A stretch of 64,000 bases of DNA from positions 41,850,001-41,914,000 of the forward strand of contig NC_043012.1 of the NCBI RefSeq assembly GCF_006345805.1, in the 5' to 3' direction. This DNA comes from Octopus sinensis. Lineage: Eukaryota. How positions within the stretch are numbered: the first letter of the stretch is position 1; each line of letters starts with the position of its first letter. Positions 32,292 through 42,626 of the stretch are shown one piece after another. The notes under the pieces were generated by a model. It was not told the DNA's origin. It made no database searches and was given only the letters and a program-made list of their open reading frames with translations. Both the position numbers and the translations under genes were made by a program.

Positions 32292-32357
32292 ACTTACATC
32301 GCCGATGTCCTGGTGTCAGTTAACCCTTTCCAACCACTCGACTGCTACACCAATGAG
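32292..32357 (+). CDS. Myosin motor gene, exon a (TYIADVLVSVNPFQPLDCYTNE)
   Basis: ttttcag acceptor and GTACGT donor; phase 0/0; matches the TYxGDILIAVNPF motif. Confidence 0.9.
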
Positions 32358-34394
32358 GTACGTAAAAGAATATTCTTTCTAAAGAACTGCCATACACCAC
32401 ATGAACATATAAAAAAAAAGTTACAAATTACATGAACATATATAAACAGAAGATACAAATATTACAGGCATCCCCCACATACACACATTAAATAAACATA
32501 AACACACATAGAGATATAAGCATGCGCAAATGAAGACATACAATAGAAATACAAAATGGCTGACGGTTAGTAAGGAGAGACACAAATAAGTAAGAAGAAA
32601 ACAAACAAAGGACCACTGATGCGGTCACAGGAGTGTGACGAAAGAACTCTGGCCGAAATAAGATTAAGATTAATGTAAAAAATAAATAACACTGAAGCAA
32701 AGTAACACCAAATATATAGTGCGTGTGTTTTTATTGGCTAAACTGGCAAAATGACCATTCCGAAATATAACAATATCTGTTTCAACACACGACTTCACAT
32801 AAAAAATCTTGCACAACAAATATTTAAACGTATATATATATATATATATATATATATATATTATATATATATATATATATATATATATATATATATATAT
32901 ATATATATATATATATATTATATATATATATATATATATATATATATATATACATATATATATATATATATATATATACATATATATATGTGTGTGTGTG
33001 TGTGAGAGAGAGAGAGAGAGAGAGAGTGTGTGTGTGTGTGTTCTAAACAAATCTGTCCGACGAACGGGAACGTGAAACTCTGAGTAACAGTTTTTGTGAT
33101 ATTTTTGCTGGTTTTTAATAAAGTATATGTATATAAACGGGAAAATACGTCCATATAGAGATAAGATGTTCCAGAGGACACAGTATTAGATGGGTTATTT
33201 ATTCCCCCATCATCGTAGCTTCGCCATTTCCTTGTGCTTGTAGATCCTTGTGTTTATGGATCCGTTGTGCCTTAATCCCTTCCATTGGAAATCGCATACT
33301 GTACCATTCATGCGCGTTATTTCTGCCTCAGACCTATCATTCTTTTTCTTACGGAGAGAACTTTGATCGATTTCTGTAGCAAATTAGATTGGTTTGCAAT
33401 GTCCTGAGGTCAGCCCTTCTCATAACTAAATGTTCAGCTCTTAAAGTCCTCAAGTGTTTAGCATGCATTTATATATTTTTCTGTTTATGCATCGGACATG
33501 AGTGCCACTACATCACCTCACAATCGATCTAAGTAGTGGATCATTACAGAAACCAAAGGATGAGTCCAGACTCGCGTCAATATAGCGTTTGGCCTTAGCT
33601 CTGTCTCGGATCCCAGAACTCATGAGGCCCGACACCAAATTTCTATCGCAAGTAAGTAATCGAGATCGCAACACTCTCCTGTAACCACACCAACCCTGAA
33701 TAGGACGTCTTTCTATCGCAATATTAACTTCCCTGCTATTCTTGGACGCTATTTACAGCTAAGTCAACTGAAGCAACGTGAAATGATGTATTTTGCACAA
33801 GCATGCAACCCTCCACTCAGTTTTGGAATTGAAACAACTATCTTACAATCGTAACACCTCCATCCTCTGCGCCAAGCACCTTCACGTTAAATGGGAACCC
33901 TTTCATAAATGAAAGAAACAACCTCCACATAAATCAACGAAGAATCCTCTATAAAAACTTACAGGAGCAGCCCCTACACAAGCAGGTACAATGGCTAGCA
34001 GAGGACCTCTTCCAACACGATTCAAGAAAGCTTCTTTTGTAGTTAATTAATTGATCTCATTATGAGGGGGCAAATTATTACAGAATCGGTAGAGCAATCA
34101 ATGACACGTTTGTGGCGTTAGTTACATTCCTTTACGTACTGATACAAGGGTGGCAGATTCGTTAGAGTGCCGGATAAAATGTTTAGCTGTATTTCTTTCG
34201 ATTCATTAAGCTCGGAGTTTAAACTCCGCCAAAGTCAACTTTGGTTTTCATACTTTTGACGTTGAGAAAGTAAATACTAGTTGAGCACTGGGGTGGGGTG
34301 GGGGATCTAATCAATTTTTTTTCTTCCCATCAGAATAACTTGCTTTGTGCCCCAAACAAGACGGAATAATAATTCAAAAATTTTGTCTTTTCAG

Positions 34395-34625
34395 ATTCAC
34401 GAAAGTTATAAGAATTTGCAAATACGAAGCTCTTTGGAACCACATATTTTCTGGTTGGCTGACAATGCGTACCAAAAAATGCGAGAGACCGGCCGAGTGC
34501 AGTGCATTCTGGTTAGCGGTCTATCTGGTTCCGGTAAAACGGAAAGTACAAAACACATGATCCGACACATCTCTAAACAGAGTACATCCAGTAGCCAACA
34601 ACAGTTGGCCAATAAAATCACCGAG
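34395..34625 (+). CDS. Myosin motor gene, exon b (P-loop)
   Basis: PHIFWLADNAY...QCILVSGLSGSGKTESTK; AG/GT boundaries; 77 codons. Confidence 0.95.
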
Positions 34626-35511
34626 GTAAATTAACAGAGGCTTTTTTTTACAAAATTGCGTTCAAGTTTCTCCTTGTCCACGTTTTTGGGATCGGGGCTG
34701 TTTGCAATATTAACCGACAAGGACTTAATTTTATCAACAACCGTATTCGCTTCAGTGGTCACAGGGTGGGAGCTCGCAAAGGTCACGGCTTTCCTCTCGT
34801 CTTCCTCCTCCCTTCTTCCTCTCTGCCTCTTCAAATTAAAGAATAAAATAAATATACCTATATATTTGCGTGTGTGTGTTATTGCATTTACGTACATGTA
34901 TTCATTTTCACAGACAGAGGGAGATGAGGTTGCACACATACAGGCACATATACAAAACTAAACATAAAGATAGATAACAGAAATATATGTGCATTCGTGC
35001 ACACACACACACACACACAACAGCGGGGCAGGGACTACCAACAGAATCTGCGCCATATCAACCATGCTAGACTCAACAGCATTAATTGGAACTCTTCCTC
35101 ACACTCCGTCTCTCGATTTGATCGATAGCCGTTGATTCCTTATTAAGTTCATGTGCCATAATTAAACAAGCTTTTCGAAACGTTTCAAGCTGTCGCATTT
35201 TGGACACACCAAGGCGATGTCGTGGAGGAGTGTTGCCTGTTTGCTGGTTTAGTCACTAACGAACCGATTATAAAACAAGTTGTATTGGCTTACACAATTC
35301 CCAGTGATAAGCCATTTTGCAGTGTACCCCTGCAATAAAGAAGGACCTCAATACAAGTGTTGGAATCTAACTACTCCCCCTGTTCTTAACAGGGCATAAG
35401 AAAATAAATTAAATTGGTTTTGAAAGAAAATGTAGAAAATCCTGCAGGGTATATTTTTTGAATTTGCAGAAAGAACTGAATGTCATTAATTTTTATTCTT
35501 CTATTAAACAG

Positions 35512-35626
35512 GTCAACCCTCTTTTGGAAGCTTTTGGTAATGCCAAGACAATCATGAATGACAACTCCAGCAGGTTTGGTAAATATCTCGAGATGAAATT
35601 TACGCAGGAAGGAAACCTCATTGGTG
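35512..35626 (+). CDS. Myosin motor gene, exon c (switch I)
   Basis: [30 protein letters not shown]; ends in phase 1, matching the next exon. Confidence 0.95.
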
Positions 35627-35691
35627 GTAGGTGTCACATTAACATGCATATATGCGAACGTAAACATACACGTATACATACACACATATAT

Positions 35692-41180: not shown

Positions 41181-41252
41181 TTTGTAAGCTGATGAGTTTG
41201 CAAGAAGACAATTTTGAAGAGGCTCTTCTTACAAATGCGTCGTTCACAAGAG
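41181..41252 (+). CDS. Myosin motor gene, exon g
   Basis: VCKLMSLQEDNFEEALLTNASFTR; ctgcag acceptor and GTAAGT donor; phase 1/1. Confidence 0.88.
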
Positions 41253-41686
41253 GTAAGTGTCTTTATATAAATCTAGATATTCATCCACCTCACTGCAATC
41301 TGTTTATTTATATATTTCTATGTCAGCCTCTCTCTTAATAAATAATGTATCTTTCTGTCTATCTGTACGGACGTGATGCATATAGGCATGTGTTTATGTA
41401 TGTGTGTGTGGGGAGTGGGTGTTATAGGTGTAAATATATCATCAGCTATGACGACGATAACAATGAGGAAGAGTGTGAGGAAAAGATTAAAGATGACCAC
41501 TTTGACCCAGTTAACTACTTTGACGACGACGTCGACGGCGATGGTAATGAGGAGGAAGAGGAGGAGGGGGAGGATGAGGAGGAGGTTGACGACTTTCCAT
41601 TCTAACAATGGTCACCGATGACGATAATAATTAATTTCAATGCCGATGATGATGATGTCTTTACGTCGTTTTATCTTTGTCTTTAG

Positions 41687-41825
41687 ATGAAAAAGTGATC
41701 AAGAACAAGACTCTCTTCGAAGCCACAGACGGTCGTGATGCGTTAGCCAAGGTCTTATACGCCAGACTCTTTGGTTGGATCGTACGTCAAGTGAACGTCC
41801 GCTTGGGAGCGCTCATTCAATACAA
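41687..41825 (+). CDS. Myosin motor gene, exon h
   Basis: EATDGRDALAKVLYARLFGWIVRQVN; phase 1/2. Confidence 0.93.
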
Positions 41826-42400
41826 GTAAGTCTATAAGCACTCTTAAAGATTTCCTTATTATTCTTTTATATCTGTTTTAAACTCTCTTTCTATATTGTA
41901 ATGCGGCCAGGCTCCGGACTGTTGAGAGTCAACACCTAATTTCATAGAATATGAAACCGGTTTGGTTTAGTTGGACAATACTTGATACTGAAACGAATGT
42001 AGTTTGATGCTCCCTAACAAATCTTGCAATTTACTGCCAGTATATGTGTGCATTGGGCGGTCGGTTATTAGAATCGTTACAACATCGTGGTGTTTGGGCT
42101 TTTCACGTTCTAAGTTGAAATCTCGCCGAAGTATAAAATTGGTTGGCGGTCAATCCCTGTGGATCAATTTCAGCAATTTTTACCTCTCTCCAAACGATTT
42201 TATACTTTTCTTATAAACTACTACTACTACTACTACTACTACTACTACTACTACTACTACTACTACTACCACCACCACCACCACCACCACCACCACCACC
42301 ACCACCACCTCTACTACTACTACTACTACTACTACTACTACTACTACTACTAATACTAATACTACTACTACTACTACTACCTGTGTTTATCGTTTGGCAG

Positions 42401-42626
42401 AGACAAAGATTTGTCGGCAGTGGCTATATTGGACATGTCTGGATTCGAGAATGCCAAAGTGAACAGTTTCGAGCAGCTGTGTATCAATGTGGCCAATGAG
42501 CAGCTTCAATCATACTTCAATGATCACGTGTTCGTTTTTGAACAGCAACAGTATAAAAAGGAACGTATACCATGGAATAACATAACCTTCCAGAATAACG
42601 ACGACATGTTGGATATGTTTCTAGCA
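42401..42626 (+). CDS. Myosin motor gene, exon i (switch II and relay helix)
   Basis: AILDMSGFENAKVNSFEQLCINVANEQLQSYFNDHVF...; GTGAGT donor; phase 2/0. Confidence 0.95.

Follow-up and report, generated by a model that had tools for sequence, protein, structure and literature searches.

The window, i.e. the whole 64,000-nucleotide stretch of Octopus sinensis DNA analysed here, carries nine exons of a myosin motor on the + strand between positions 32292 and 42626 (Table 1). The exons join in phase into 1236 nt, that is, 412 codons with no stop. All 18 of their splice sites are canonical AG/GT, and the introns between them measure 340-2038 bases. The spliced peptide matches the Pfam Myosin_head profile with E=2.8e-127 over positions 30-432 of 679 and covers about the first 60% of a myosin motor, counted from its N-terminus, with the P-loop, switch I, switch II and the relay. 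The 412 codons with GLSGSGKT and LDMSGFE, which an earlier sequence-only reading had put together at this locus, are reproduced exactly, with AG/GT borders throughout. Non-coding, transposon-rich DNA flanks the cluster on both sides, over more than 32 kb upstream and over more than 21 kb downstream.

Table 1. Exons of the myosin motor in the window, with their coding content and the support for each
Feature	Position	Strand	Coding content	Support
Exon, 66 nt	32292-32357	+	TYIADVLVSVNPFQPLDCYTNE; purine-binding-loop region	AG/GT, phase 0; tblastn with P0001, P0003, P0010, P0394
Exon, 231 nt	34395-34625	+	PHIFW (34440-34454); P-loop GLSGSGKT (34518-34541), Leu codon CTA (34521-34523)	HMM match, E=1.2e-29
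Exon, 115 nt	35512-35626	+	Switch I NDNSSRFGK (35557-35583)	AG/GT, HMM
Exon, 148 nt	37538-37685	+	LLEKTRV (37555-37575), FHIFYY	AG/GT, HMM
Exon, 121 nt	38026-38146	+	ILHNENKKQPIYGGIEDFEHNKFMFHKQLTLLKVVGFTDW	AG/GT
Exon, 118 nt	39025-39142	+	EISIIFTLLASVLHITNISFSKVEDTDSVTIADRMSLHH; Thr of the chitin-synthase clade (peptide position 243)	
Exon, 72 nt	41181-41252	+	VCKLMSLQEDNFEEALLTNASFTR	AG/GT
Exon, 139 nt	41687-41825	+	DEKVIKNKTLFEATDGRDALAKVLYARLFGWIVRQVNVRLGALIQYK	AG/GT, HMM
Exon, 226 nt	42401-42626	+	Switch II LDMSGFE (42429-42449), relay-helix region; 3' end ...DMFLA at motor profile position ~445	

Extent of the gene and its octopus orthologues

Residues 98-509 of the O. vulgaris protein CAI9733599.1 (P0394; 'myosin-IIIb-like', 667 aa, gene range 166 kb) are 100% identical to the window peptide. 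The O. bimaculoides protein P0001 is 97% identical to it, and none of the 12 differences falls in the core motifs. The 66-nt exon is at the earliest the second of the gene; exon 1 (MAGMMTTSIEDL...QKYY, where MAGMMTTSIEDL is the N-terminus of P0001) has no match in the window by permissive tblastn and lies outside it. The start-Met region of P0394 aligns with position 1 of the synthase-myosin HMM, and the orthologous octopus models begin at the motor, with neither a kinase nor any other N-terminal domain before it.

No motor exon past profile position ~445 was found in the 21,374 bases between position 42626 and the window end. The hunt combined inspection of the + strand open stretches by eye and with regular expressions, tblastn with six long relatives and with P0394, and a full-length synthase-myosin HMM run against six-frame fragments of at least 12 aa. 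Neither tblastn with the long relatives nor the synthase-myosin HMM revealed a chitin synthase or transmembrane exon within the window, and a C-terminal transmembrane region with PF03142 is absent from the window and from the public octopus models alike. An Rfam scan of the window gave no matches.

P0394 has no tail domain and ends after the converter. It lacks motor HMM positions 445-627, and its segment preceding CIKPN is shortened. This gene model is plainly incomplete, and the public octopus models are truncated. Homologue searches spanned ~0.55-1.75x the query length, so that a first query of 309 aa returned truncated models only. An X-padded query of 1303 aa, which reached proteins of 723-2280 aa in a set of 5.8 billion clustered at 90%, returned neither a longer protein with a highly identical head nor a close cephalopod protein. 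The C-terminal 158 aa of P0394, also used as an X-padded query, had 0 matches among proteins of ~660-2080 aa. No transcript-derived protein with this head was found in the length ranges searched.

Placement among chitin-synthase-linked motors

We compared the window motor with the lophotrochozoan myosin-chitin synthases (CS-MD, Atrina Ar-CS1 type; groups A-C of Zakrzewski et al. 2014). This family and the kinship of its motor to myosins III and XVI have been described (PMC3942024, PMC3942036). The sister group of the synthase-linked motors is formed by the myosin-MH2 proteins (called 'myosin III-like' by Sebe-Pedros et al. 2014, PMC3942036). They occur widely among echinoderms, hemichordates, brachiopods, annelids and molluscs, where they too carry the annotation 'myosin-IIIa/b-like'.

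In the NJ tree (140 motors, 403 columns; distance methods were used throughout) the window motor forms a clade with chiton and cerithioid snail proteins (100%), and this clade is nested in the one holding every chitin-synthase-linked motor (96% bootstrap). The synthase-linked and MH2 motors make up a joint clade (97%), and the kinase-bearing motors fall outside it. With gamma distances the first labelled relatives were exclusively chitin-synthase motors in 199 (alpha 0.7), 199 (alpha 1.5) and 197 (alpha 5) of 200 replicates. The window motor also carries six of the nine residues specific to chitin-synthase motors (H24, W42, L135, D142, T243, S350), as picked by a frequency-based column scan, the stricter derived-column scan having yielded almost nothing. 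His24, Asp142 and Thr243 are shared with the myosin-chitin synthases, as are the Trp of PH.FW and a small residue in switch II. In this comparison the Trp is confined to the chitin-synthase-motor clade, and LDMSGFE recurs letter for letter in three myosin-chitin synthases of full length, those of Mizuhopecten (P0280), Lottia (P0294) and Mya (P0297). Both motifs had been named as synthase-like in the sequence-only reading, and this holds.

The likeness extends to the gene. The motor stands at the extreme N-terminus with no kinase, as in the myosin-chitin synthases, and the Gigantopelta synthase gene has the same intron after ...DMFLA. Compared with most synthase-linked motors, the window motor is more conservative and nearer the ancestral state. 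Its nearest long relatives with Pfam Myosin_head and Chitin_synth_2 are those of Lingula, Lottia and Pecten, and kinase-bearing myosin III is more distant. Group HMMs (chitin synthase, MH2, kinase and SH2 were scored) gave 553.9 bits for MH2 motors and 541.9 bits for chitin-synthase motors and did not separate these two. Since the HMM scores favour MH2 by 12 bits, the placement rests on the trees and the signature residues. We read the ambiguity of the HMMs as heterogeneity of the synthase group and not as MH2 evidence.

Hence, judged by its sequence, the window motor is outside class III and within a spiralian clade of chitin-synthase-linked motors (molluscs, brachiopods, annelids), where it belongs to an old molluscan paralogue group that also includes chiton and cerithioid snail proteins. 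The tree, the signature residues and the lack of a kinase in the models bear out the earlier proposal of a myosin-III-related motor nearer to chitin-synthase motors than to kinase-bearing myosin III.

P-loop and active site

The canonical GESGAG-type P-loop, used as a screening motif in PMC3942024, is absent from the window motor, which has GLSGSGKT; the myosin-chitin synthases, unlike it, have GE/DSG[AS]GKT. To turn the CTA codon into GAA or GAG, two or three bases would have to change. The Leu is also present in O. vulgaris P0394 and O. bimaculoides P0001, and since the O. bimaculoides protein reads GLSGSGKT too, the residue is not an error, in line with what had been argued earlier from the codon. 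Among the 387 myosins examined, this position is E in 379 and D in 6, and L in the Octopus entries only.

The switch I Arg and the switch II Glu, in NDNSSRFGK and LDMSGFE, are both kept, as was noticed at the first reading. The two deviating columns flagged at that reading are exactly those in which the window motor departs from the 69 highly conserved motor columns, the other 67 being kept; two of 69 is inside the range of working relatives. This pattern of conservation indicates that the motor is constrained, with one lineage-specific P-loop change, and not decayed.

Altered nucleotide handling as a consequence of the Leu is plausible. Because the P-loop Lys-Thr, the switch I Ser/Arg and the switch II Gly/Glu are intact, retuning of the coupling between the P-loop and switch II seems more likely than abolished nucleotide binding. 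We suggest that the changed coupling would act on how fast ATP is bound or hydrolysed or ADP is released. In Dictyostelium myosin there is a Glu180-Arg232 salt bridge (PMC7582316). A direct transfer of this bridge to the window motor was rejected, since the Arg is replaced by Met, Ile or Leu superclade-wide; class III (MYO3A/B, NINAC), like the window motor, has a hydrophobic residue at the Arg232 position.

Tail of the octopus motor and biological meaning

The sequence-only reading had proposed that the motor may be the head of a myosin-chitin synthase and perhaps an actin tether for chitin deposition in beak or radula. Membership in the motor clade stands (96% in the NJ tree, six of nine residues), and the window itself holds no synthase exon. 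We favour, with somewhat better than even confidence, the reading that this is an actin-tying head of the chitin-synthase clade with an Octopus-specific P-loop Leu and with putative synthase exons outside the window. The rest of the motor, the transmembrane region and the GT2 chitin synthase would then lie elsewhere in the 166-kb gene or in a downstream model that annotation has split off. Heads can be split off by annotation, because in Gigantopelta a model with the remaining motor and Chitin_synth_2 comes 170 bases after the 'myosin-IIIb-like' P0122 (584 aa), on the same strand. All complete models of the surrounding clade, rotifers aside, have the synthase. The product would be an actin-binding ATPase head joining the chitin synthase to cortical actin, and this tie would lead to chitin being deposited at defined sites.

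A weaker candidate, although one with an appreciable chance, is an orphan motor of the chitin-synthase type: an old molluscan paralogue whose synthase was lost or gave way to another tail, and whose head acts unattached or through some other anchor. The gene models of the window's own clade (three species) are all short and none has a synthase, P0394 stops past the converter, and no longer protein with this head appeared in the ranges searched. The synthase is not obligatory in the synthase-linked clade, because its rotifer members carry a small-GTPase tail in its place. However, the presence of a synthase in every complete surrounding model outside the rotifers and the splitting of short 'myosin-IIIb-like' heads seen in Gigantopelta both speak against this reading. 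Within it, the Octopus Leu may yield an actin tether that is slow or poor in ATPase activity, comparable to class XVIII (Myo18A/B). The class XVIII myosins, which have Ser or Arg in place of the same conserved P-loop Glu, serve as actin tethers and lack ATPase; unlike the window motor, where both are intact, they also have altered switch I and switch II Glu as well as insertions, and they are unrelated to it within the myosin tree (PMC3122231, PMC11112018). It is improbable, in our estimate, that an ancient lineage represented in octopus, chiton and cerithioid snail shed the synthase and kept a stand-alone head, which the Leu would have turned into a slow or non-cycling actin-binding module in Octopus. 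If true, 'tether' myosins would have arisen twice independently, once in class XVIII and once here.

We give even less weight to a decaying or unexpressed relic, i.e. a partial copy of a chitin-synthase myosin with lost or degenerate distal exons. The missing motor positions 445-627 of P0394, the lack of a transcript-derived protein in the searched length ranges and the radical P-loop change would fit it, as would the chiton counterpart P0003, which is frameshifted, labelled 'LOW QUALITY PROTEIN' and without any more motor exons in the 8.9 kb that follow it. However, a relic is hard to reconcile with 412 stop-free codons, with 18 of 18 canonical splice sites, with only two of 69 highly conserved columns changed, as in working relatives, with 97% identity and all core motifs kept between two Octopus species, and with the retention of the lineage in chiton, snail and octopus.

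It is very unlikely that the window motor belongs to a myosin-MH2 protein, in which the motor is followed by a Smad-type MH2 tail. The best single full-length match, Acanthaster P0121 (head and MH2), is 48% identical, the HMM scores lean to MH2 by the 12 bits given above, and MH2 proteins share the N-terminal motor (45-49% identity) and the automated name. However, they have four specific residues of their own, none of which occurs in the window motor (0/4), and form a separate tree group: the 96% clade with the window motor contains not one of the 36 MH2 motors, and MH2 joined first in at most 2 of 200 gamma-distance replicates. The chiton owns a true myosin-MH2 (P0292, 45% identical) on a contig different from that of P0003, its orthologue of the window motor, and tblastn found no MH2 exon within the window. 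Finally, a true class III myosin with kinase exons upstream of the window is hardly credible: despite the automated 'myosin-IIIb-like' names, 42-45% identity to myosin III motors, the same broad superclade and the same switch I, class III differs by its kinase domain, its LDIFGFE switch II (LDMSGFE in the window) and its separate position in the tree, the octopus models start at the motor, tblastn with P0128 found no kinase exon in the window, including the 32 kb upstream, and cephalopods own a separate true myosin III with a kinase (P0125/P0271 cluster).

In shells, radulae and chaetae, myosin-chitin synthases are thought to couple chitin deposition to the actin cortex, and to our knowledge those of cephalopods are hardly described. 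With the actin-tying head of a chitin synthase as the preferred reading, the octopus gene is not a new kind of system but one more member of the synthase-linked motor clade. 'Myosin-IIIb-like' is the label that annotation pipelines give to such heads, and the placement in this clade corrects it. The octopus gene points to a separate, old molluscan paralogue. The Octopus Leu is a naturally occurring substitution of one residue, with the remainder of the active site intact, at a position where all other myosins examined have Glu or Asp. A comparison of the wild type with a Leu-to-Glu form would bear on the role of the near-invariant Glu in a superclade that is without its usual Arg partner.

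The nine-exon myosin head fragment

The head fragment consists of nine forward-strand exons, each with an AG acceptor and a GT donor, which are spliced in phase into 1236 nt, or 412 stop-free codons. This is exactly the count of the sequence-only reading, which also placed the P-loop, switch I, LLEKTRV and switch II where they are found (see table), and its sequence observation is confirmed in full. Pfam assigns Myosin_head to the peptide (E=2.8e-127, profile positions 30-432 of 679), and over its full length it can be aligned with myosin motors of many classes whose structures are solved.

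Features of the window (window coordinates)
Feature	Position	Strand	Remark
Nine-exon block	32292-42626	+	
P-loop GLSGSGKT	34518-34541	+	Leu codon CTA at 34521-34523
Switch I	35557-35583	+	in spliced exons
LLEKTRV	37555-37575	+	in spliced exons
Switch II LDMSGFE	42429-42449	+	in spliced exons
Flanking introns	1-32291; 42627-64000		>32 kb; >21 kb
Microsatellite blocks	23202-25684		GC 21%
Transposon remnants	1295-2182; 45224-47208; 15974-16495	-	Pfam
Similar RT-tail ORFs	31027-32095; 62694-63197		
Transposase-looking ORF	57853-58218	+	without Pfam match

In Octopus vulgaris CAI9733599.1 (‘myosin-IIIb-like’, 667 aa) the 412 residues recur unchanged as residues 98-509; its gene model spans 166 kb, and no other gene is called within 10 kb of it. 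O. bimaculoides A0A0L8GZY1 (477 aa) is 97% identical to the window peptide, and none of the 12 differences falls in the core motifs. The gene is already public, under a misleading automated name.

The exons sit close together, within 10.3 kb, and the introns between them measure 340-2038 bases. Within the window, neither the 32.3 kb upstream nor the 21.4 kb downstream yielded a further exon of the gene, or one for a kinase, a chitin synthase or MH2. The flanks were searched by eye and with regular expressions, and by tblastn with six long relatives and the O. vulgaris model; exon 1 was sought under permissive settings, and a full-length synthase-myosin HMM was run against every six-frame fragment. 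In the synthase gene of Gigantopelta the intron after the ...DMFLA exon is, at 4.2 kb, the longest of the motor-coding part; a long intron at this place may be old.

The surrounding sequence is AT-rich animal DNA with many microsatellites and transposon debris. Three near-identical (TGTATGTATGTA)n / (TATA)n blocks of ~530-700 bases, with strong GC skew, follow each other at ~1 kb spacing and hence represent a tandemly duplicated unit containing the satellite. Among the minus-strand remnants are a reverse transcriptase (RVT_1, E=1.3e-11) accompanied by zf-RVT pieces, as well as a helicase 2B domain of Pif1 type (E=2e-15) such as Helitrons carry.

Placement of the motor

To collect relatives, 1.84 billion representatives were searched exhaustively with HMMER, and Pfam scans and source names were added. 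The nearest ones show four Pfam architectures: motor plus chitin synthase (Lingula, Lottia, Pecten, many bivalves and gastropods), motor plus Smad-type MH2, motor plus SH2, and kinase plus motor, which is true myosin III. All four are routinely named ‘myosin-IIIa/b-like’. Synthase-linked motors are published as kin of myosins III and XVI (PMC3942024, PMC3942036), which accounts for the automated myosin-III names.

A neighbour-joining tree of 140 motors (403 columns, 200 bootstraps) unites the window motor in a 100% clade with those of O. bimaculoides, the chiton Liolophura (P0003) and the snail Batillaria (P0010). Around it lies a 96% clade, which holds all chitin-synthase-linked motors and no MH2 motor. 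When distances were gamma-corrected, the first labelled relatives of the window clade were exclusively chitin-synthase motors in 199 (alpha 0.7), 199 (alpha 1.5) and 197 (alpha 5) of 200 replicates. We also defined nine columns where a residue is common in synthase-linked motors and present in at most 10% of MH2, kinase and SH2 motors; six of them show the synthase state in the window motor (H24, W42, L135, D142, T243 and S350). LDMSGFE recurs exactly in three full-length synthases (Mizuhopecten, Lottia and Mya) and in the head of the Gigantopelta synthase gene. Thus, the motifs that the earlier reading named, among them PH.FW with its Trp (W42), are genuine marks of the synthase-linked clade. 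Distance trees and signature residues, the basis of the placement, put the motor with chitin-synthase-linked motors, and that reading was right on the motor's family.

MH2 motors attach one node further out (97%), as the sister group of the synthase-linked motors. Myosin-MH2 proteins (Acanthaster P0121 and P0279-P0317; ~1200-1450 aa) form a large family, all auto-named ‘myosin-IIIa/b-like’, in echinoderms, hemichordates, Lingula, Owenia, many bivalves, a chiton and the sponge Corticium. A 2014 survey gave this architecture from one choanoflagellate and one sponge only.

The tail of the gene

We lean towards the fragment being the head of a myosin-chitin synthase. In Gigantopelta aegis, ‘myosin-IIIb-like’ P0122 (XP_041375436.1, 584 aa) is followed 170 bases downstream on the same strand by an 1808-aa model with the rest of the motor, a transmembrane block and Chitin_synth_2; the two (CM027791.1, L002:10001-37071) are colinear pieces of one annotation-split myosin-chitin synthase gene. 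Hence, a head like that of the octopus can simply be the front of a synthase gene, cut off by annotation.

This case also speaks against an orphan head, with another tail or without synthase, as does the synthase in every complete non-rotifer model of the clade. However, the rotifer members carry a small-GTPase tail instead, and we regard an orphan head as possible, if rather unlikely. The bdelloid proteins P0277 and P0278 combine a chitin-synthase-type motor (LDMSGFE, PHIFW, P-loop GDSGVGKT) with Arf/Ras small-GTPase Pfam domains; they are the window's top-scoring matches of 723-2280 aa (51% and 49% identity). No database protein of 723-2280 aa contains the octopus head at high identity, and none of roughly 660-2080 aa has the O. 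vulgaris C-terminal part; several chitin synthases are longer than 2280 aa.

It is improbable that the gene is a relic. Of the synthase-myosin HMM, the O. vulgaris model covers only positions 1-444 and 628-680; it has 66 unrelated residues in place of the lower-50K part and a shortened segment before CIKPN, and ends just past the converter. Either the gene is damaged or, given its huge size, it has been modelled poorly. The chiton orthologue (‘LOW QUALITY PROTEIN’) has a frameshift at the homologous last exon, and the next 8.9 kb hold no further motor exon; the copy may be damaged, or the assembly at fault. Its locus (CM072727.1, L001:10001-31989) retains the same 66-nt second exon, after a 10.6-kb first intron, and continuation requires a frame shift at 30830.

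A myosin-MH2 protein is very improbable: none of four MH2-specific columns carries the MH2 state, and MH2 motors lie outside the 96% clade. The MH2 profile does score highest (553.9 bits vs 541.9 for chitin synthase, 480.0 for kinase and 470.9 for SH2), a small lead that we read as a side effect of fast-evolving, heterogeneous synthase-linked motors and a conservative window clade. True myosin III, its kinase exon not found within the window, is scarcely credible, and the earlier rejection of it was right.

The active site and the P-loop leucine

The leucine is no sequencing error: GLSGSGKT occurs in both the O. vulgaris and O. bimaculoides proteins, which makes it a fixed feature of the genus Octopus. 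In the 387 myosins whose P-loop could be read, this position is Glu in 379 and Asp in 6, mostly of the synthase-linked clade, and Leu in Octopus entries only. The chiton and snail orthologues keep Glu, so the substitution took place on the branch that leads to Octopus. Over 69 columns conserved in at least 93% of the 140 motors, the window deviates in two, this one and LLEKSRV, where Ser has become Thr. With 2-8 such deviations in synthase-linked motors, this is within the range of working relatives.

In Dictyostelium myosin II the corresponding residue, Glu180, is the partner of Arg232 in switch I and also contacts Gly457 in switch II; it is put forward as a communication hub (PMC7582316). 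However, Met, Ile or Leu replaces Arg232 across the whole superclade of the window motor; therefore, the P-loop Glu must act otherwise there, and the Dictyostelium mechanism is not directly transferable. Class XVIII myosins, which are ATPase-dead tethers, likewise replace this Glu, but in them switch I and the Glu of switch II are changed as well, both of which are intact in the Octopus motor (PMC3122231, PMC11112018). We suggest that the ATPase of the octopus motor may be retuned rather than dead. Myosin-chitin synthases have been known as a family since 2006, and the octopus motor is another head of this type, with one unusual residue.
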